A stretch of 37,255 nucleotides of DNA from Paraphysomonas bandaiensis (Eukaryota; Protista; Chrysophyceae), in the NCBI GenBank assembly GCA_965644295.1, contig CBFFRP010000304.1:1-37255 (forward strand). Direction: 5' to 3'. Of the stretch, positions 2,081 to 18,274 are shown in pieces. How positions within the stretch are numbered: position 1 is the first letter of the stretch; each line of letters opens with the position of its first letter. The position numbers were made by a program, and so were the translations under genes. The notes under the pieces were generated by a model, which worked only from the letters and a program-made list of their open reading frames with translations, was not told the origin of the DNA and ran no database searches.

Positions 2081-2571
2081 TGTACAGTCAATGTAGATAT
2101 GGAGGAGTTAACCTCTAAATGTATATGTTGCAAAGTATGGTAGATACTCCTATATATATATATATATATATATGTCTGTACAGATATATACACACTGATG
2201 CTGCATCTCACTGTAAAAATAGGTAACCACATTTTCTTGAAATAGTCAACTTTCAGATTCAAAATTCGTCATTTTGGAGATTATAGAAAATGTGGGGTAG
2301 GAATTTCTACCTATTTTTTGCAGTGAGGCCAATTTCTCACAGCTCTGTGTACGTATATATACTGTATATGTATGTGGCCTACAGCAGTACACAGCAGTAC
2401 ATCAACTTCTCAAGTACAGTACTATATTATACATCAGTACATCAGTACATCCGTACAGATGTACCTCTATATGTAGCTACATGACAGCTCCAATCAACAC
2501 TCATGACACTCATGTATATAAACCACACCAACATACATATATCTTCATAACTACATATCCCTCCAATCAGT

Positions 2572-5229
2572 ATGGAAGAAACTCGTACAGAGGAATCTCC
2601 ATTACATGCTGATGGGAAACAAGAGAAAACACCTGTAAAACGAGCAGTAGAGATGCCTATAGCTTATAATGGACAGACCATCATGTCTGCTGCTAGTCAA
2701 GGTATATATACACTATATACATCCTTATATATATATTCATGATACGTATAGGTAATTTACCTGTCGTGGTATTGTTATGGGGCATGGCATCAGCTAAAAA
2801 GCAGTCGTTAATGACACCGGATGCTCAAGGGAACAACCCTATGCATTATGCATGTCTGGCTAACACTGGAGAGGTGATGGGATTCCTTCATCAACAGATG
2901 AAAGGGATGTTAACCCCAGAGATCAGACTTGTGGATTCCGTAAACAATGCCGGAGAGACCCCTCTTCTTCGATCTATGGCCACAGGGCAGATGCTCGTTA
3001 TTAAGGTATGTATTTATTGGAGATTGTTGCATGTAAATCATGTATCCCCACAGGCCCTTTTGGACGAAAAGAGTGATCCACTTGTACGAGATTCCAATGG
3101 GAATACTGTTTTCATTAATTGCGCCAAAAACTGTCAATTTTGGTGCTTGAATTATATGTACAATCACATCAGGCATGGACAATGTTACTTCTTTTTGCTA
3201 CTGTTTTATTGTGATAGTTTTATAGGGATAATCATGGGCCGAATGAAGTATTCGAATTAGTTAGTGCGAGGGATAATAATGGTATGGGTGCCTTAGAATG
3301 GGCAGCTGAATCTGGCGACCTAAATGCTCTTGAGTTTTTAATTCGACAATGTGGTTTGAATCCTTTTCGCCCTGTGGAGTCTACTGGACAAACACCCTTA
3401 CATATTGCGATAAGTCGGCACCGTATTGACGTGGCACTTTTCCTTTTAGATATGGGCGCTGACCCCCACCACAAGGACACGCAAGGGTTATCTCCTCTAA
3501 ATCTACCTGCTATTCGGCAGGACAGGGAGCTGAGGTGGGCACTGCAATGTCATCCGGCTGTGAGTGGGAGATGCTGTCAGTCCTCGCCTCGGACTACAAG
3601 TGCGCAGGATATTGAGGCCAGCGTATCTCCTCCTGCAGTTTGGCGGGAGGAAAATGGACGCAAGAGAAGTTTCGCAGTGCGACGAACTTGTGAGACAAGG
3701 GTCTTATACGTTGCACTCTACGCAGTTGTTGTGTTTGGTATCTGGCTTCTGGCTACTGTTATCCCATTTTATGGGTGGATCCCTCTGGTTGCGGCTGGTG
3801 GAGGGGGATACGGGTATTACAATTTTATATTACTCTGGTGTAGGTTTTCTCACCCTGACACACAGATATCTCTCGATGCAAGTTGGGACTCTACAAGCGC
3901 GTGCGATGCACGCCAAGGGTAGACTCTTGTTAGATCAGTGGCAGGTATCTATATTCTACTCTTAATGCTATTACTTTTGACGATTTCCTCTTGTATGATG
4001 CAGCAAGTGGTCGGAGCCCCAGAAAAGTATGTGGGCTTCTGGGTGGGAAACGTGGCAGCTTTTCTTTTCTATTTCTTTTGCTGCATGGCGTACAGGTACA
4101 GTTCTGAGGACGACGATGAAGGTACCTTCAAAGGAGCAGCACGGAACTCCCAAGGCTTAGCAGGTCTGGATTGCCTCACTGAGGACCCTGCTCTCTTCTG
4201 GACGGCGCTGCTGTCTCTTGCGGTTACTATTGTGCTGTGGGTAGTTGTCGTCTGGATCCGTACAGACCCTGGAATGGTTGACACAAGAGCGGATGATTTT
4301 GACGAGGTTAGGACTTGCCTAGACTGTGTGTTTTTATTGAAGTATCTACCACAGGTTATGAAGCAGAGTATTCTCAGTGGAGGAACAGCCCCCAGTGCCA
4401 CCACCTATTGCAGAACTACTCTAGTCAAGAAGCCGATCAGGTATAACATAGCATTGGCTCTCAAACAACTCATCACTGCTCTCACCAGGAGCAAGTACTG
4501 TACAAGCAGTGGTTTCGTCGTAGCTCGAATGGATCACCACTGTGTATGGCTTAATAATGCGGTAGGATACGGCAACCATCGAATGTTTATGCTACTACTG
4601 TACTCGCACCTTTTCACCAATGTTGCTACCCTCGCTCTGTTTATCCGGTGAGTTATATAGTTAAACTGTTGCCGTGCTTTGACTATTTTTAAGGGCGTTG
4701 CATCGTGATACATCCACAGCCGCTGCATCTGTTGTGACTGGAGAGCTTATTTCCCAACGCATGCTACTATTGACGGCTTTGACAGTCTTTTTGCTAATCA
4801 TATCATGTGGAATACTAGTGCTTGTGGTAGAGCAAACTCACAACATTGTGACTAATATGGTATTGCTTAACTTTGCGCGTACCTACATGAATTGATTGTT
4901 TTTTCTCTATCGTGCAGACCACAAATGAGAAAGTAAATCGGGCGCGGTACTGGTGGATGAAGGGGCCAGATGGGAAACCTCTAAACAGGTTTGATAGAGG
5001 GCCAGTGACTAATATACTGGAGTTCCTCGGGGTGCCAGGATATCACATCGACTACATGACGATTATGTCTATTCCCTCGAGCCCAGCTACCGGTGGATCA
5101 TCCAAGGTCAGTAAAGCGAAACCAAATTCAACACAATCAGAAATGACGACAAAGCTGTCAACGGCGGACGCTAGTGCGAAATGTTCGTGCAAACATGATC
5201 ATGACAACGGTAAGACTTATGATACATAG
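2572..5229 (+). CDS. Ankyrin-repeat DHHC palmitoyl acyltransferase (Akr1/ZDHHC13/17-like), multi-exon
   Basis: Ankyrin motifs (GNNPMHYAC, GETPLLRS, GQTPLHIA), TM helices, PIR/SKYC..VARMDHHCVWLNNAVGYGNHR DHHC domain, TTNE and NRFDRG motifs. Short GT-AG introns link the ORF pieces; ATG at 2572. Confidence 0.92.
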
Positions 5230-5845: not shown

Positions 5846-6721
5846 CTATTCGCTGTTTAAGAGACTTCTCAACTTGGGAAGCAGAACCTTTTCAGCAAGC
5901 ATGGAATGTCCCTTATCAGTAAGGTGATGTAAATCTCCCAAAAAGTTTGATGGGTCTCTAACAAATTCACAGTCGGGATTGTCAGTACTGACAAAAGAAA
6001 GCAAGTCGGCATGCTCTTTACAGATCTCTTCTATTCGTTTGTTTACTTCAGTGACCTTTGCAATACAGTTATTCACATTCCAGCGTAAATAGAAAGGTGT
6101 GAGGGTGATACCCAGATATACAACATGTACAGATGGATTATTTTCCCATAATTTCTTTAAAAATAATTGAAATCCTTCAACAGCAGATGATACACTAAGA
6201 CCTTGTGCTATATCATTCGTACCACAGAAATATACTACAATACGTGGATGATATCTGATACATAAATCATATATTAATGGTATAATATCATATGTACAAC
6301 TTCCACCAAATGCAGAATTAATAATAGGGATATTTAATACAGTAAAATCATCTATAATGTACCTCCAATATGTGAATGTTGAGCTCCCTATAAAACATAT
6401 ACATCCTTTACTTAATGGTAGATTTATATGAATATTATGAATTTTATTATATGCTGTTTTTTGTATAGTTTTAGATGAAAAAATTGGAAAATATTGACGT
6501 AATAATGTTCCTATTATGAAATAAGTATATAATACTGTATCACCTATAGGGGATTTCATATACCAGGGTGTTACTGCATGTGTGAGCATACGGTGGTATT
6601 CTACTCCTATGAAGTAGTATAGATAGAGGAAACTACAAAAAATTGCTATAGATAATACAATCATCATTATAGGTGTATGGTAATGAAGTATAGACTGGGA
6701 ATATATTGACATACTATACAC
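5846..6721 (-). CDS. SGNH/GDSL-type hydrolase with N-terminal membrane anchor
   Basis: Blocks FIGSS, NSAFGGS, GTND and DLHH (catalytic DxxH); intronless 291-aa ORF. Confidence 0.85.
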   Translation of the reverse strand: MYSMSIYSQSILHYHTPIMMIVLSIAIFCSFLYLYYFIGVEYHRMLTHAVTPWYMKSPIGDTVLYTYFIIGTLLRQYFPIFSSKTIQKTAYNKIHNIHINLPLSKGCICFIGSSTFTYWRYIIDDFTVLNIPIINSAFGGSCTYDIIPLIYDLCIRYHPRIVVYFCGTNDIAQGLSVSSAVEGFQLFLKKLWENNPSVHVVYLGITLTPFYLRWNVNNCIAKVTEVNKRIEEICKEHADLLSFVSTDNPDCEFVRDPSNFLGDLHHLTDKGHSMLAEKVLLPKLRSLLNSE

Positions 6722-7106: not shown

Positions 7107-7531
7107 GAAACGACGGTAATCAGGCACAAAAGTCCTATGGTCTATCCCATTTTAAGTACTTCTTGCAGACCTAAACACAACTTCATTGAATTATGAAACT
7201 TTGAAACCGGAGGACATAACTGTCGAACTGTTCCAGTTCTTTGGCGGATATCTTTCGAGGTGAAACTGCAGCGTTCGAATATCTGATCGGCGTGGATCAT
7301 ACCATTGTCATTGCTGGGAAAGCATTGGCAAACTACACCAATCCTCACCACAAAACATATCCTCCGAGATTGGTGTTTGACGACCGCAACCGCTCACTTG
7401 TATCGACCTTTATGAACAATTTATTTGTACTCTCCTATTCGGAATTTACACCGACCGGCAATCTATATCATTTCAAACTAACGGTTTTCGCTGTAATGAT
7501 TATGCACGTGGAGAGCTTCTGTGGATTGTAA
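7107..7531 (+). pseudogene. Internally deleted, diverged Crypton-like tyrosine recombinase remnant
   Basis: ~7190-7256 translates YETLKPEDITVELFQFFGGYL (cf. YKELIDSDINVELFQCFGGFL in the intact YR). It is joined directly to FRGETAAFEYLIGVDHTIVIAGKALANYTNPHHKTYPP (cf. FSGECSIFEYIMGLDVTIAVGGKILSGYSNPRNKIYPP). In-frame stop at ~7172; catalytic core missing. Confidence 0.85.
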
Positions 7532-7573: not shown

Positions 7574-8025
7574 TGTTGAAGATACATGATCGTCATCATA
7601 ACGTCGTCATTATCAGTTACACTTCTAATTATTCCGTTGTTTTATATTGTTATTTATAATTCTCACTTCACTGTGTTCATTACTTAACACTCTAATAATC
7701 ACAACATTGTTTTAGTATTACTAAGACCAATCCTTTATTTGGTAGCGAGATGTCAGTTAAAGTTACAAGTTACGACTCAACCGACTCGGATTCGACAACC
7801 GACAAGCAAAAAGACTCAATGCCGAAATTCGATGCGAAGAACTTCTCCAGGTGGCAGAAGAAGTGCCGCGCATGGTTCTATCGCAAGCCTAAGATCGTTT
7901 ATACTCTACAAAACGATCACCCAATTGAGCCTGAAGCAGGAGAAAACTCAGTTCACTGTGTTCATTACTTTACACTCTAATAATCACAACATTGTTTTAC
8001 TATTACTAAGATCAATTCTTTATTC
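7574..8025 (+). mobile_element. Ty1/copia-type LTR retrotransposon fragment (LTR-like repeat, PBS-like site, gag N-terminus)
   Basis: ~78-bp direct repeat at ~7662-7739 and ~7948-8025. TGGTAGCGAGA (PBS-like) at 7740 immediately precedes ORF 7750-7980 with MPKFDAKNFSRWQKKCRAWF, resembling the copia gag N-terminal PxFDGxNFxxW motif. TGTTGAAG at 7574 resembles an LTR start. Confidence 0.6.
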
Positions 8026-9160: not shown

Positions 9161-9793
9161 ACACACAAGAAGGACGAAGGGCAGACGGACGCTCGTGCCG
9201 CTTAGGCATTCTTCCTGGGCCAGAAAGGCCCTCCTATCGTAATAAAACATTCGTTTTATTACTCTTCCTTTCCACTCTATCTATAAATATAATATAATAA
9301 TTATCTTATATATAATAATATTAATAATACTATACTTTAAATAATAATATTTTTAAGTTATTCACTTTATACACCCACAAAGTAACACAAATAACAACAT
9401 GGATGAAATGGATAATATTTTATAAGATAATAAAAAAATAAAACAAATTTTGGAAATTAGAAAATCCACCCAATCTATCCAGCATAAAAAAACTATACTT
9501 AAAATATAATTGGCATTATGGCTTTCTGGCATTTTATGGCTTTTATGAAAATTAGAAAAAGTTATAAAATAAAAGTTATTATATATATAGTTTCTGTTAT
9601 AAAAGCCAGTGCCATAACAACGCCAGTGGTAACGGTGATGGTGATGTAACGGTGTTGGTGTCAGTGTTGGCATTGGTGTTGTAAAGGAAATGAAAAGAAG
9701 ATAAAACAAAATACACGCAACGAACAATATACAAAATAGTTTTAAAATATCGGCTTCTTTCTTTAAAGTATGATAAAGAAATGCTTGAACTTA

Positions 9794-11245: not shown

Positions 11246-12483
11246 TTACACTATCCCAAGACGATCAAGCAACACGTGACAAAAATCATCACATTTTGAA
11301 TTGGCCTTAATTGCTCCAATTATAGTTGACTGCTCAGCACCACTGATGTTACCTCCACACACCTTCTCGAAGATAGTCATCGCCAGCATCCAAAAGTCTG
11401 TATTAATAGATGCAACAGGACCTCTGTTATTCCGACGATCCCACAACTCCCTCGGAAGATAGGCCGGAGTAGAAGCACTGCGTGAGTTGAACAGCACCAA
11501 ACTACCCAAATCCGTCAGAATAAACTCACCGCATGTGTTGATGAGGATATTGGGAGGCTTCACATCATTGTGAGCATAGCCATTCTGATGCAGGAAGTCC
11601 AGTGCACCAGAAAGACAAGTCCAAAACATGGGTGCTGTGATCAAATCTAAAGAAGGAAGGTGCTCGAGGGTGACAGGATGCATAGGCATAAACATGAAGA
11701 ATTTGAGATGTCGTTCATAAAGCTCAAACGAGATGATCCACTGACAGGGCGGCTGATCTTTCAAAACATTCTCAAAGTTCTTGGCGCGCTCGTACTCCTG
11801 AGGTGAGCATATCTTCAAAACATAAGGGACAGAGTGCTTGAAACAAATCTGCAAATTATCGTTGCCATTGATCAACACTCCATCAAGAACAAATCCATTC
11901 CTTTCCAGCTCTATAGTGGTTTGAACAGAAGGCAACTTCAAAGCGTCTTCGTAGGCACATGCAAGGAGTTTTATATCATTAGTTCTGATAGCTATGTCCA
12001 CGCTCCATCCAAACTTCTTAACCATACGAGAAATCGCATCAGGATTCACCTCTGCAACATTCAATTTGCAAGCCAGAGCCACTAATTCAGTCACTGACAG
12101 TGTTGACGATCCTACAGGAAAACAAAATGAACAAACATCAATCAAAACTAAAACAAGAACGAACCATCCGAAGCAGAACACAAACTCAAAATTCAGTTAC
12201 CTGAAGTCGATCGAAGTTCACCCCTCAACTTCCTCTCTTCATCTATTGACTTTCTCACTACTATTCTCTCTTCGAGTAATGACTTCTTCTCTTCTCGCAG
12301 CTGCTTCTTCTCTTCGTGTAAACGTTCAAGTTTACGCCTCCGAAATTGTTTGTCATCATCGGCTAATGCTTTAACTTCAGTATCGTCAATAGAAGATTCC
12401 ACGCTTCGAATCTGTTCATTAATTTGGTTTATTTCAGTCTCAACACGGTCTATTGCTGCATTGATATCATCGATATCACTCAT
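11246..12483 (-). CDS. Coiled-coil plus divergent protein kinase (possibly Crinkler-like), 2 exons
   Basis: Exon 12483-12201 (coiled coil, EEKKQLREEKKSL), intron 12200-12112 (GTAAC..TGTAG, frame preserved), exon 12111-11246 with VLKI, HNDVKPPNILI, DLG, TPAYLPRE and DFWMLA. Confidence 0.8.
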
Positions 12484-13029
12484 CTTATATACAGTGATAT
12501 TAACTAAGTGATGTCGTTCCTTGTGGTTGTTGGCTGATAGCTATGGGAAAAGAAGGTGCTGAGGGGAGGTATGCACCTTAGTTTTCGGGAATAAATTGAA
12601 GCAAATATACTCGATATTACTGATGTAAAACTACGGCTGGAATACAGATAATTATTGTCTCAATACTAGAGGCATTTTGGAACAAAAATATACAGAGGAC
12701 GCTGATACGGATTCACATTTTTTCAGTAACATTTTTAGTAATATGTTAGAGTTTTTTTTGGCACGTGGTTGTGAAAAACAGTCATTTTAGTGCCTCTCAT
12801 TGACATGACAAGTGGACTTTTTCTGTAAAATGTGGAAGGTACCGTACTCAAGCCCGCACCATAATGGTGTGGAACTATATAAGTGGTGATGATGAGTGAC
12901 CAGTGGTATGTATGGTGTTGCTGGTGAGTAATAGATCCAGGGAGGTGGGTGTTGAAGGAGGAGCTCTCTCATCACAGCATGGTATCATACATACAGAACA
13001 TAATAACAGCGAGAACATATCATAGTAGC

Positions 13030-15187
13030 ATGGAATCAACTACCACGGAATCAACTACCACGGAATCAACTACCACGGAATCAACTACCACGGAATCAAC
13101 TACCACGGAATCAACTACCACAGGGGGCATTAGAAAAGTCGGTGATGGGGAAACCAAAAATCGTAACTCCTCTGCGTTAGCTCAGTTTGCGAAGTACTTG
13201 GAGATGCGGTTCGACGGGAAGAAGAGGTATAAGGAACTCATAGACAGTGATATAAATGTAGAACTATTTCAATGTTTCGGTGGCTTTTTGATCGATCACG
13301 CCGTCCATGGAACAACGAAGAAGCCTTTGACCCTAGGTACTGCTTGGCAGTATTTGTCAGACACGAAGACTGCGCTGACGAAGCGATTTAAAAGAAATGA
13401 GTTATTAAGCAGCTCCAATGAGCTGTGGTACAAAGATGTGAGAGCGGCAGTATCAAAGCATATTATCAAGCGGTGTATCGCACAAGGAGTGCGTATATCA
13501 GAGAAAACAAGTCCAGTGGGGAAAGAACTAATGAAGCGCATAGGTGAATACATTATACATCGGGCATCTGATTTCTCCGGTAAGTGGACATACTTCACAT
13601 ATCTATGATTTACTGTATGCTAATAAACTTTATTTAGAAGTGAAGAAGTATTCATTGTACAATCTCTATTTGGTTTTCACGTTTGCTGCTGTTGGTCGGG
13701 TGTCTGAAGCAATGTTTGCTTCGTATAATAATGCAATGTGGCACTGCGATGGATACTTAACGTTTGATTGGACAGAATTGAAGGTGGCTTCTATCAAAAC
13801 AATGAACTTTTTTCCCGACTACTCTTGTCTAGAGACTTGTGTTTTCTTCGCTTATTCAATGTACTGGATGTCCTGTACTGCAGCAGATCTCAACGGTGAC
13901 TTCGTCTTTCCAGATCTAGCATTGACTACATCAAGCGCTAGTCAATTTGTTTCTAAGCTACTAAAACAAATGATCGGGAAGGTACCTGGAGTTACAAAGG
14001 AAACAACAGGCAAGGGTCTTAGAGTCGGGGCTGCAACTGACATAGCCAGTAGTCAGTCAGGCGGCATCTTCCATGCGATTATGCGTGGAGGATGGGACTT
14101 CTCCGGAGAGTGCAGCATTTTTGAGTATATCATGGGACTAGATGTCACTATTGCTGTGGGTGGAAAAATTTTAAGTGGCTACTCTAATCCCAGGAATAAG
14201 ATATATCCACCCGAGTGTGTATTTATCAACAATGGAAACCGAGAACAAGTGATGGCGTTAATCGAAACATGTTATCCACTCACTTACCCAGAATTTGGGG
14301 TTGATGGCTGTCTATTTCAATTTAAACTCTCTGTGTTTGCTACATTCCTTATGAGGTTACCATCATTTGTTTCTAAATACACGGCACAACATGCAGTGGT
14401 TTGTAAATTCAAGCACAACATGATGCGCCACCATTTCACTTGGAATGACATAATGCAATGGAGTGCTGCGATTGAGGAGGAATGGCTTCGCCTTAATTTT
14501 GTAGACACAAGAAATGTAGACGAAATTTACCAGGAGAATCGCATTCTTCGAGACCAAATACAACAGCTTCATAGAAAGTGTGACACCCAAACTATTGCAA
14601 TAGCTGATCTGCACAAGAAATTAGACACTGCTGTGGCTGATATTCTAGAAGGCTTGAAAAATATTCCAACGGATACCACTATACCAACTTCAGAGACTGT
14701 ATCACGGATACCTACATCGCCTACAGTCTTGCCTCCGATTACTGAAGGACCTTCCAAAGGTCCATCCACTACTACGACAAATGTTTTTCAATACATGAGA
14801 GTTAACATGCAGCGCATGCCCCATATATCCTTCATTCAATATAAAACTCTCGAAAAATTATGCTTATCAACAGTTATTATTGACTATTTTGATTATGAAT
14901 TACATGAAATTGTAGGAAAGAGATACCCTATGGTAGACAACGTCAACAAACAGAAAAAACTAAATCGAGTATTGACTAAAGGACTCGGCCTATTGTACGA
15001 TGACGAGAAACGTTTTCTTGATGAGCCGAAACCCTGTATGGCAAGTCAGTCTACTTCGTACAGAGAATGGAAGAGTAATTTAAAATGCATAGCTGAAAAG
15101 GTTGAATTGCGTGTTATTGTTGATTTATTTGGTCAGGAAAATTACGACAAGTTTCACCCCAAAAAAAAGCCTCTAAGAAATACATAA
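13030..15187 (+). CDS. Crypton-like tyrosine recombinase, 2 exons
   Basis: Intron 13580-13637 (GTAAGT..TGCTAAT..TTTAG) fuses the two ORFs in frame (..SDFS|EVKKY..). Catalytic motifs GRVSE (Arg), ELKV (candidate Lys), GKGLRVGAA (H/K-x-x-R), RGGW (Trp) and IFEYI (Tyr). No RT, so Crypton rather than DIRS. Confidence 0.85.
13032..13121 (+). repeat. Perfect 15-bp x6 coding tandem repeat (ESTTT)6
   Basis: GGAATCAACTACCAC repeated six times with no substitutions at the YR N-terminus. Confidence 0.97.
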
Positions 15188-15264
15188 ACAGTATATATGA
15201 TGCAATGAGTGCACGAAGGGACAGTGATGGTAACATTATTCCAAGGACAAAGAAAAGGAAACTT

Positions 15265-15814
15265 CAGTCTGATGTTAGTAATCTGTAGAATGCCAATATA
15301 TGTATTCATTTATAACCACTCCATCAACTTTTTATAATGTACCCTTATAATTAATGATTCATTAGTAATTGGAATACATCGTATCATTATTTACAGAGCA
15401 TACAACAGTATAATCAACCATTACAGCGTTCAGCATTTTATTATTCGACACAGTCTGATGTTAGTAATCTGTAGAATGCCTATATGTATTCATTTATAAC
15501 CACTCCATCAACTTTTTATAATGTACCCTTATAATTAATGATTCATTAGTAATTGGAATACATCGTATCATTATTTACAGAGCATACAACAGTATAATCA
15601 ACCATTACAGCGTGCAGCATTTTATTATTCGACACAGTCTGATGTTAGTAATCTGTAGAATGCCTATATGTATTCATTTATAACCACTCCATCAACTTTT
15701 TATACTGTACCCTTATAATTAATGATTCATTAGTAATTGGAATACATCGTATCATTATTTACAGAGCATACAACAGTATAATCAACCATCACAGCGTTCA
15801 GCATTTTATTATTC
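15265..15814. repeat. Tandem repeat A, ~185 bp x3
   Basis: Units start CAGTCTGATGTTAG at 15265, 15451 and 15635; near-identical. Confidence 0.95.
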
Positions 15815-16198
15815 CACACCGTTCAGAATTCTTATCACATACAGCCATACTGCATACCCTTACACAACATGACACATATTCACTGCAAGATGGAACAGGG
15901 GCAGCCGGGCGCTTGTGTCGCTTAGGCATCCCTCTTGCACCGGTAAGTATAAACGTCATTGCGCCTACAACAGCATAATAAACCATCACAGCCTTCAGCA
16001 TTTTATTATTCCACACCGTTCAGAATTCTTATCACATACAGCCATACTGCATACCCTTACACAACATGACACATATTCACTGCAAGATGGTACAGGGGCA
16101 GCCGGGCGCTTGTGTCGCTTAGGCATCCCTCTTGCACCGGTAAGTATAAACGTCATTGCGCCTACAACAGCATAATAAACCATGACAACATTCAGCAT
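15769..16198. repeat. Tandem repeat B, 197 bp x ~2.2
   Basis: TACAACAG.. motif recurs at 15769, 15966 and 16163; intervening sequences near-identical. Confidence 0.95.
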
Positions 16199-16949
16199 CT
16201 CATATACCATCACACAACATAGTGCATGCATGATATACAGCCTTCTATTCCTTCAAATGTACCACTTCTCATCTCTCTGCATACCTGACACTTTAAATAG
16301 GATGATGGGAGCATGATGCTCCCACCTGGAATTCAATCATTGATATCCATATCATATCACTTCATACCATAATATACAGCCCTTCACAGTTCCTCTCCAT
16401 ACAGCCTTATAAACCTCGTCCAGTAACTGCATATCTCATCTCACAGTTTCATGAAATAAGATGGTAGCAACATGTTATCACCTATCATTCAAGCACTCAT
16501 TAACGTGTATCTGCTGCATATGGCTGCCTCGTCATATTACTATATACATATACTCGATGCATGTGATATGATGCACTATGCTATGATGCACTCTGCTGAT
16601 TGGATCACTCGATGGGCGCACTTGCTGTGCGGCCTTTGTGTAAAAACAAGGGTGCGGGATCCCGCACCTGCGGTGCGGGCTAAATAATTTTTCAGGATTA
16701 AGATGAACTTCCCGTCCTCTTACACAGTGTAGATTCGTATTGAATACACACATACAGGCAGAATATACATACGCAGCATCTGCACTATATAATCCTACGT
16801 ATCATATCAACGTATGGAGGTCTAGTAGTGGGGAGCCATATGCATATATGTCTGGTGGTTGCAATCCTATTCACCTCCATTCCAATTCCATATATATATA
16901 TACCTCTATACATTCATTTGACTACTAATACTTATCATAAGAAGTCATC

Positions 16950-18274
16950 ATGAGTGATACAAAAGCAACATTAGAGGCAAGAACTATTCAAGTAGATGAT
17001 AAAGTCTACTCAGCTAAAGCACTGGCTGATGAACATCCTGGTGGTGATTTATTTATTAAAGCATTTGCTGGTCGTGATGCTACTGAAGCATTTATGTCAT
17101 ATCATCGTCGTCGATTCCCTCATGATAAAATGAAACATACGGCTATTGGTAAAGCAGTTTCTATTAAATCAGAGGATGCGGATAAGGATTATATTGAGCT
17201 TTGTGAGATTATCGATAAAGTATTACCAAGAGCGAAATCATTTGCACCAACATCTTATTTTGTTAAGGCATTTACTATTATTGCTATTGCTGTTGGGCTT
17301 GAGGTAAGATAGTATGCTATATTTTTGCTGTGATATCGTATTCATGTCGTATCCAGTTGTACATTCACCTCACCCGAAGCTACAAGTGGTATCTGACTGC
17401 TGTGTTGGGGCTAGTGTATGCTTTTATTGGGCTCAATATTCAGCACGATGCCAATCACGGTGCTATATCTCGCAACCCTAGAGTCAACAGACTTTTGGGC
17501 CTAACTCAAAACTGGATTGGTGGTTCAGCAGTGGATTGGATACACCAACACGTTGTGCAGCACCACGTACACACCAACGACCTGCACCATGACCCAGACA
17601 TTGCGGGTAATACATTCATTCGACTCAATCCGCTGCAGCCTCTGCTCCACTTCCACGTTGTGCAGCACATATACATCTTCCTTCTAATCTGTGGCTTTGG
17701 CTTCTCCGTTGTCTTCACGTCAATGCAACACCTTTACACTGGCATGCACAAGAGTAGAATGTCTGAGATGTTGGCGGGGTACAGAGTGCGGGAGTTTCTG
17801 GCAACATTTCCTTTCTTTTTGCGCTGGTTTGTTCTGCCGATTGTGCAGGTGCCCTCTGTCCAGACTGCTCTAAATGTAGCGCCAATGTTTGTTACCGGTG
17901 GGTTCTATCTGGCCTTTTTCTTTGTCATTTCCCACAACTTTGTTGGTGTGCACATGTTCGACAAGACAAAGACAGATAAGAAGAAGGAGTCATTCTTGTA
18001 CAGCCAAGTAGCATCTTCTTGCAATGTGGGAGGGCCTTGGTTGGCCTTTATTAATGGTGGACTTAACTACCAAATTGAGCACCATCTCTTTCCCCGTATA
18101 TCACACACACACTATCCTAAAATAGCCCCCGTTGTTCGTGAATTCTGTCGCAAAAAAGGTATCCCGTATGTGCACTTCCCGACTATTTCTGAGAACATGG
18201 CCTCTTGTGTGAACCACCTCTACAAGTTTGGCAATGACAAGAACCCCTACCCCTCCGTCAAAGCGTGGAAGTAA
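16950..18274 (+). CDS. Front-end fatty acid desaturase (cytochrome b5 fusion; delta-4/5/6 type), 2 exons
   Basis: HPGG haem motif, His boxes HDANH, HVVQHH and QIEHH; intron 17304-17356. Confidence 0.93.

Follow-up and report, generated by a model that had tools for sequence, protein, structure and literature searches.

The window analysed here is positions 1 to 37,255 (37,255 nucleotides, the whole stretch) of contig CBFFRP010000304.1 of the chrysophyte Paraphysomonas bandaiensis (GenBank assembly GCA_965644295.1). Its segment 12819-16693 is very probably one copy of a recently amplified Crypton DNA transposon of the CryptonS-like, stramenopile type. The family to which this copy belongs is real, well delimited, recently active and expressed, and it comprises autonomous as well as non-autonomous members. 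The structure and splicing of the gene, its transcription, the fold and catalytic residues of the protein, and the number and ends of the copies were all established directly. A preliminary description of the window had already proposed a Crypton-like tyrosine recombinase DNA transposon with defined DNA ends, and in this it was right, as exact ends, TTTTC repeats and a recombinase gene have all been found. The coordinates of the features are given in Table 1.

A six-frame search of the 62.5-Mb genome returned the entire coding region at 15 loci, 99-100% identical, and parts of it at many others, and a DNA search with the whole element returned 15 full copies and at least 25 internal-deletion derivatives; the last 224 bp of the element occur 41 times in the genome. 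When the window was compared by BLAST with the copies and their 4-kb flanks, identity began at 12818/12819 and ended at 16693/16694 in every copy. These sharp edges therefore define the element as 12819-16693; the bounds first proposed, 12851-16681, had located it correctly but were slightly too narrow. TTTTC abuts all of the ends examined (21 distinct 5' flanks and 17 distinct 3' flanks). The base preceding the 5' TTTTC is T in 12 of the 21 copies, and the terminal repeat is often one of 6 bp, while the base following the 3' TTTTC is never G; all copies start with (N)TTTTCTGTAAAATGTGG and end with GGTGCGGGCTAAATAATTTTTC(N). The flanking sequence differs between loci, with multiple copies lying at unrelated genomic sites. 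At the actual ends there are no terminal inverted repeats (TIRs) and no long terminal repeats (LTRs), and the inverted 9-mer considered below is subterminal only. The idea of an undescribed family marked by hairpins rather than by short direct repeats had to be given up in view of the TTTTC direct repeat found at every end examined.

Apart from the two exons of a single gene, 12819-16693 contains no long open reading frame (ORF). The forward ORFs 12949-13608 and 13544-15187 yield one continuous frame when 13579 is joined to 13638, and the same splice, between ...ASDFS and EVKKY..., is used by a gene model of the Joint Genome Institute (JGI; 742 aa, 99% identical). Evidence from sequencing runs (four runs, two of RNA and two of DNA) was taken from assembled Logan contigs. 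Contigs skip the intron in the two RNA runs, i.e., one polyA metatranscriptome and one probable RNA run of the organism, and not in the two DNA runs. From the splice in the JGI model and in the RNA contigs it therefore follows that the gene is real, transcribed and spliced, and the spliced recombinase with catalytic motifs, as first described, is confirmed in both its intron and its catalytic set. Exon 1 contains a 15-bp repeat encoding ESTTT (13032-13121), with six units in the window copy, five in most full copies and three in the JGI model.

The copy in the window differs from the long form of the gene at its 3' end, where a run of eight A residues (A8) stands in place of nine (A9). A9 is also found in the JGI model and in contigs of all four runs, and it extends the frame by 40 codons to ...PRTKKRKLQSDVSNL, with a TAG near 15286, adding a conserved basic tail. 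This tail is kept in diverged paralogues, with 67% identity over residues 474-742 (contig C63) and 81% over residues 701-742 (contig C237), and separate database proteins match residues 583-742. Truncation of the A8 type is present in 10 of the 15 full copies. The window copy is accordingly read as encoding a C-terminally truncated protein, through a 1-bp deletion in the A9 run; having lost the conserved basic tail, it probably relies on intact copies. Fragments of more diverged recombinase relatives (45-80% amino acid identity) were observed at C63, C281, C301 and C237 (loci L046, L022, L020 and L028, respectively); all of them are C-terminal halves, and no GC-rich 9-mer was found in the stretches examined.

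The gene encodes a tyrosine recombinase resembling Cre, about 700-740 aa long and extended by an additional C-terminal region. An AlphaFold2 model from a 47-sequence alignment reached a predicted local distance difference test score (pLDDT) of 93.3 and a predicted template modelling (pTM) score of 0.89; single-sequence AlphaFold gave a pLDDT of 37 and was unusable. In Foldseek against the PDB, the top ranks were all Cre (probability 1.00, TM about 0.57 by target), and below them came Flp, XerH, Ndc10, Tn1549 Int and lambda Int. At the sequence level, too, the family profile finds Cre (E=0.017); the match spans HxxR...W...Y and brings R, W and Y into register. This profile was built from a trimmed alignment (A2, 47 sequences), a version that included the coiled coil having matched coiled-coil proteins only. 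In this alignment R216, E219 and K244 never vary, and R324, W348 and Y359 are each shared by all relatives but one (46 of 47). The protein carries the catalytic set R-K-x-R-W-Y; the codons of the catalytic Arg (13697-13699) and Tyr (14126-14128) lie in exon 2.

Pfam, run on both exons, returned no recombinase family and no reverse transcriptase, its sole weak match being a non-enzymatic one (E 0.29), and Phage_integrase was touched weakly by two of 46 relatives. No match was obtained with phmmer against PDB sequences, and word-indexed homology searches gave one and three matches only. A HMMER scan of 1.84 billion representatives returned 560 relatives, 215 of them at E<=1e-10 and all unnamed. 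By language-model features as well as by shape, the protein falls nearest to ESM-Atlas clusters from oomycetes and diatoms (TM 0.84-0.86 over >400 aa), and one close profile match is a hypothetical protein of Skeletonema menzelii.

With regard to mobility, the 14 full copies that could be aligned differ by two indels, i.e., the 15-bp ESTTT unit and the A run of 8 or 9, and by five single-nucleotide polymorphisms (SNPs). The commonest derivative, written in positions of the element as 1-800+2105-3875, numbers at least 12 copies, and a DNA contig (X3) of another strain shows it as well. Its junction corresponds to 13616/14923 in the window, the 5' breakpoint lies inside the intron, and its coding capacity is limited to the N-terminal ~183 aa. 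Derivative 1-1203+3532-3875 has three copies, among which those on contigs C58 and C259 have unrelated flanks and that on C396, having the flank of the C58 copy, does not count as an independent one. Derivative 1-859+3652-3875 has three copies as well, at sites that are distinct by coordinates only, and several further deletion derivatives are singletons. In these comparisons the copies differ only by internal deletions, which give rise to putatively non-autonomous derivatives. The remnants of ~860 bp at the 5' end and 224 bp at the 3' end at three sites suggest that the 1-859+3652-3875 derivatives can be mobilised in trans.

Two pairs of copies stand tail-to-tail. On C58 (L031, G000:C58:212439-221983) a full copy and a 1-1203+3532-3875 derivative have their 3' ends 46 bp apart, with the same 37 bp outside both 5' ends in inverted orientation, a flank that recurs at C396. 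At G000:C346:91318-96531 two 1-800+2105-3875 copies have their 3' ends 133 bp apart.

It could be argued that the recombinase is merely a passenger, that a DDE-type transposase encoded elsewhere moves the element, and that TTTTC arises as a genuine 5-bp target-site duplication, the target being strongly preferred. A 5-bp repeat does flank every copy, and a duplication and a crossover overlap look the same when only the sequence is at hand. However, the actual ends carry no TIRs; the pentamer is always the same, as expected of the overlap region of a recombinase; the sole ORF is an intact, expressed recombinase with conserved catalytic residues; and the architecture agrees with that of published Cryptons (PMC3212892). 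We therefore regard a DDE passenger as quite unlikely and keep to a Crypton moved by its own family's recombinase.

The region downstream of the gene had been taken for a spacer-like array built on a recurring ~46-bp motif, forming a variable cargo or cassette zone. The motif itself is real: a ~46-bp module common to the 184-bp and 197-bp units, as their alignment shows, occurs five times (15401, 15585, 15769, 15966 and 16163), where none is expected by chance. The array, by contrast, resolves into two adjacent tandem repeats that share this module, with units 96-98% alike and with no unique spacers or spacer-like content. As the 184-bp repeat starts within the last codons of the long-form ORF, it sits in the 3' untranslated region (3' UTR). 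The numbers of repeat units are equal in 14 of 14 aligned full copies, with no more than four SNPs downstream of the ORF, and the repeats are absent from derivatives 1-1203+3532-3875 and 1-859+3652-3875, each at more than one locus. The array is therefore no cassette zone; judging from the aligned copies, the 184/197-bp repeats are a fixed 3'-UTR part of the element and not cargo, and they are probably dispensable in cis. Rfam and tRNA scans of the element gave no match.

An integron- or Starship-like tyrosine recombinase element, with a variable cassette or cargo zone between conserved sites downstream of the recombinase, was the reading that the preliminary description favoured, and the ~46-bp module repeated behind the gene and the conserved GC-rich motifs at the ends do lend it some appeal. 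Aligning the copies with their flanks, the check proposed at the outset, defined the ends but revealed a post-recombinase zone that is invariant apart from internal deletions. The tandem units are near-identical, simple internal deletions account for the differences between copies, and a relative on a metagenome scaffold has no tandem-repeat array at all. No variable cargo was found between conserved sites in the 14 copies, and such an element, for which we see only a very slim chance, was rejected. Just as improbable is that the repeat block is an assembly artefact. Short-read contigs do collapse it (368-nt skip, 84 ambiguous letters), but the same unit numbers recur in the 14 aligned full copies and in more than 12 type-A derivatives on different long contigs, and parts of the 184-bp as well as the 197-bp repeat are covered by DNA contigs from two other strains.

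A separate observation concerns the minus strand of 15965-16284. RNA-run contigs (X9, X7), and only these, contain the joints 16207->15963, 16284->15963 and 16207->16160, whose skipped parts read CT..AC on the plus strand; on the opposite strand they have the form of GT..AG introns, and their acceptors fall at corresponding places in the 197-bp units. In the metatranscriptome, RNA contig depth peaks over 15908-16563. There may be an antisense spliced transcript of the 3' region of the element, although the signal is weak, with only 27-28 nt on the sides of the joints.

The movement of the element is DNA-based and not via RNA, the intron being kept in all aligned full genomic copies and absent from RNA contigs, and no match to reverse transcriptase being found. 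The least probable alternative of all, namely that this is what remains of a tyrosine-recombinase retrotransposon (DIRS, Ngaro or PAT) after loss of the reverse transcriptase, can point to the tyrosine recombinases that such elements encode and to retrotransposon fragments nearby in the window, but it is opposed by the absence of reverse transcriptase and RNase H from all 15 full copies, by the lack of split or inverted LTRs, by an intron retained despite spliced mRNA, and by near-identical copies showing that the present 3.9-kb form transposes.

In the model proposed by Kojima and Jurka (2011, PMC3212892), Cryptons leave the genome as a circle and integrate through recombination between short identical stretches. 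Along these lines, the recombinase would bind near both ends, the candidate sites being four 9-mers of the GCCCGCACC type, one at the 5' end and three at the 3' end. Strand exchange within the 5-6-bp TTTTC overlap would release a circle with one TTTTC, and a circle or tandem junction in this model would read ...GCTAAATAATTTTTCTGTAAAATGTGG... with a single TTTTC. By the same reaction the circle would re-integrate into a genomic TTTTC, so that each insertion would come to be bracketed by TTTTC. The circle intermediate, the binding sites and the mobilisation in trans are what we infer. The 5' 9-mer is identical in 14 of 14 aligned full copies. The matching inverted GC-rich hairpins reported at first are partly upheld: inverted 9-mers do occur at both ends, but they are not terminal, and single-strand folding is no better than that of shuffled sequences at the 5' end (z -1.0) and modestly better at the 3' end (z -2.3). 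We regard the subterminal inverted 9-mers as candidate recombinase sites and not as signs of a new kind of element.

One may go further and combine these points into a single picture, in which a distinct, active Crypton lineage has a recombinase that recognises subterminal inverted GCCCGCACC sites (one 5' and three 3', including the palindrome) and crosses over at TTTTC, insertion is biased to the TTTTC ends of resident elements, for which the left flank of the window copy and a head-to-tail joint in another strain may be cited, and the 197-bp repeats host a regulatory antisense spliced transcript. In its entirety this picture is doubtful, and we put it forward tentatively.

Several points weigh against the Crypton reading or parts of it. 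No empty site, allelic or paralogous, was found in the assembly, where the right flank is unique and the left flank repetitive, and no bridging contig was found in two other strains. There is no clean circle junction among the Logan contigs. In one DNA contig of another strain, position 16693 is joined to 12818, the sole end-to-end joint seen; the shorter arm of this joint measures 31 nt, TTTTTC is retained twice, and a nested or tandem insertion accounts for it better than a circle does. Furthermore, conservative cut-and-paste alone leaves the amplification to ~40 copies unexplained. The 5' 9-mer is altered in one old copy of 94% identity and the energies of the 'hairpins' are unremarkable, on account of which the assignment of binding sites is weak. 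The classical His of HxxR (position 321) is Lys in this element and T, H or K in the family. Finally, a fuzzy search found no close match to the published CryptonS motifs among 156 relatives, nor does any of the 150 best matches come near them; for this reason the element is probably a lineage separate from published CryptonS, to which it is likened by its features and by a motif layout compared by eye.

Table 1. Features of the Crypton copy and of a related relic in the window (positions in the window).
Feature	Position	Strand	Remark
Relic of a different, decayed Crypton recombinase gene	7253..7522	+	Found with the family profile hidden Markov model (HMM), profile positions 259-350 of 393
Whole Crypton element	12819..16693	+	3,875 bp if both TTTTC repeats are counted; 3,870 bp net
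5' terminal direct repeat TTTTC	12819..12823	+	Presumed crossover or target pentamer
9-mer GCCCGCACC	12852..12860	+	Possible binding site of the recombinase, overlapped by a weak palindrome (12857-12869)
Exon 1 of the recombinase gene	13030..13579	+	Holds the 15-bp repeat (x6)
Intron, 58 nt, GT..AG	13580..13637	+	Spliced in RNA; kept in every aligned full genomic copy
Exon 2	13638..15187	+	Catalytic domain, coiled coil, C-terminal region; ends early in the window copy (A8)
A8 run	15161..15168	+	A9 in five other full copies
Tandem repeat, 184 bp x3.0	15265..15819	+	Tandem Repeats Finder, 98% matches
Tandem repeat, 197 bp x2.2	15769..16198	+	Tandem Repeats Finder, 96% matches; adjacent to the 184-bp repeat
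Perfect 18-bp palindrome GGTGCGGGATCCCGCACC	16651..16668	+	Two inverted 9-mer copies, one mismatch each
9-mer GCCCGCACC, inverse of the 5' copy	16672..16680	-	13 nt inside the 3' end
3' terminal direct repeat TTTTC	16689..16693	+	Base before it is always T

The left flank of the Crypton deserves a word of its own. The ~70 bp to its left (12754-12823) are a repeat present at at least 10 other loci, and the single paralogue of it examined (C58:12807-12905) reads through ...GGACTTTTTC into unrelated sequence. The start of the Crypton therefore coincides with the TTTTTC that terminates another repeated unit, a sign, perhaps, of insertion into the end of another element. Farther left, at 12573-12709, lies a high-copy repeat of ~137 bp that resembles a miniature inverted-repeat transposable element (861 candidates at first look), with dozens of matches of 83-94% identity on many contigs and a contig depth of ~530 in other strains.

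A sister copy had been described 6 kb upstream, with the same 5' motif and 3' element. In that region, likeness to the element is confined to 7253-7522 (44% identity over 90 aa by tblastn; ~270 bp of coding sequence) and to the 44 bp of 9166-9209, which match a portion of the 197-bp unit at 82%; neither the GC-rich 9-mer nor the terminal 21-mer of the 5' end occurs there. The sister copy was therefore rejected in favour of a decayed relic of another Crypton family with retrotransposon-like ORFs adjoining; by eye, a Copia-gag-like fragment lies beside the relic at 7750-7980 (+). Other neighbours recognised by eye are a GDSL/SGNH-like ORF at 5846-6721 (-), a protein-kinase-like ORF (HNDVKPPNIL) at 11246-12181 (-) and a coiled-coil ORF at 12193-12483 (-). 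To the right of the Crypton, two ORFs within 16950-18274 (+) resemble the two parts of a split gene for a front-end fatty-acid desaturase fused to cytochrome b5 (HPGG motif, His boxes); they begin ~250 bp from the element, and no contig of any of the four runs covers the intervening 16728-16891.

Hardly any eukaryotic transposons are as poorly understood as Cryptons, which are usually few, old and hard to delimit. To our knowledge there is no experimental demonstration of their circle-based mechanism. If the combined picture drawn above is true, the present family, together with its natural mini-elements of ~1.1 kb, would be a ready experimental system for how Cryptons move. The mini-derivatives would narrow the cis-requirements to at most 860 bp + 224 bp, and the exact ends, the fixed crossover pentamer and the intact, transcribed master copies would make the family a practical candidate for a transposition assay. 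It could also serve as a marker of recent genome change between strains. No new category is opened thereby: this is a new member of the Crypton family, and the notion of an integron- or Starship-like element fails.

We file the element under Cryptons because it has a recombinase as its sole gene, no reverse transcriptase, TIR or LTR, invariant short repeats, copies at unrelated sites and an intron retained in DNA. These same features match the Crypton definition of Kojima and Jurka (PMC3212892) and, reportedly, that of Goodwin and colleagues. Among Cryptons, its likeness is to CryptonS. The CryptonS elements of oomycetes and a diatom have terminal direct repeats of 5 or 6 bp, mostly TATGG, and a conserved C-terminal region with no GCR1_C, and CryptonS-1_PTri of Phaeodactylum tricornutum has CTGTAAG termini, a length of 4,671 bp and 4 copies (PMC3212892). 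Likewise, the present element has a single tyrosine-recombinase gene, a similar size (CryptonS elements measure 3.1-4.7 kb), a stramenopile host, no TIRs or LTRs, terminal direct repeats of 5-6 bp, and no GCR1_C but an extra C-terminal region, the C-terminus of CryptonS having been compared by description only. Non-autonomous derivatives exist on both sides (CryptonS-2N1_ALai). By eye, against the published alignment (Additional file 4), the two share GRxxE/D, the hairpin K-T-x3-Q/K-x3-F-x-D, and RGxW (RGGW in this element) followed by the Tyr 11 residues on, whereas CryptonA has a His and a 9-residue spacing. The differences from CryptonS are equally plain: the termini are TTTTC and not TATGG (most) or CTGTAAG (CryptonS-1_PTri), TATGG being no strict requirement; Lys replaces the His of HxxR; and the element has GC-rich 9-mers inverted near its ends, along with long tandem repeats in its interior. 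In contrast to published Cryptons, which are mostly low-copy, this family has ~40 ends and 14 near-identical full copies.

The deletion derivatives also have their counterparts. CryptonI-1N1_RPro and CryptonA-1N1_OL are non-autonomous elements that have kept a few hundred bp of each end and were amplified in trans (PMC3212892). The derivatives described here similarly keep a few hundred bp of each end but, unlike those two, comprise several independent deletion types within one family. Compared with the Cre/loxP and Flp/FRT systems, the recombinase has the same two-domain fold and the same Arg-Lys-Arg-Trp-Tyr arrangement, with the Cre-type Trp, and recombination is presumed to take place across a short overlap flanked by protein-binding repeats. 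Nevertheless, it is about twice as long as Cre and Flp, with a coiled coil and a C-terminal domain in addition. Its candidate repeats lie asymmetrically, 13-34 nt from the overlap, in place of the compact 13-8-13 site, and where Cre and Flp each act on a single cognate site, this transposon inserts at many TTTTC sites.

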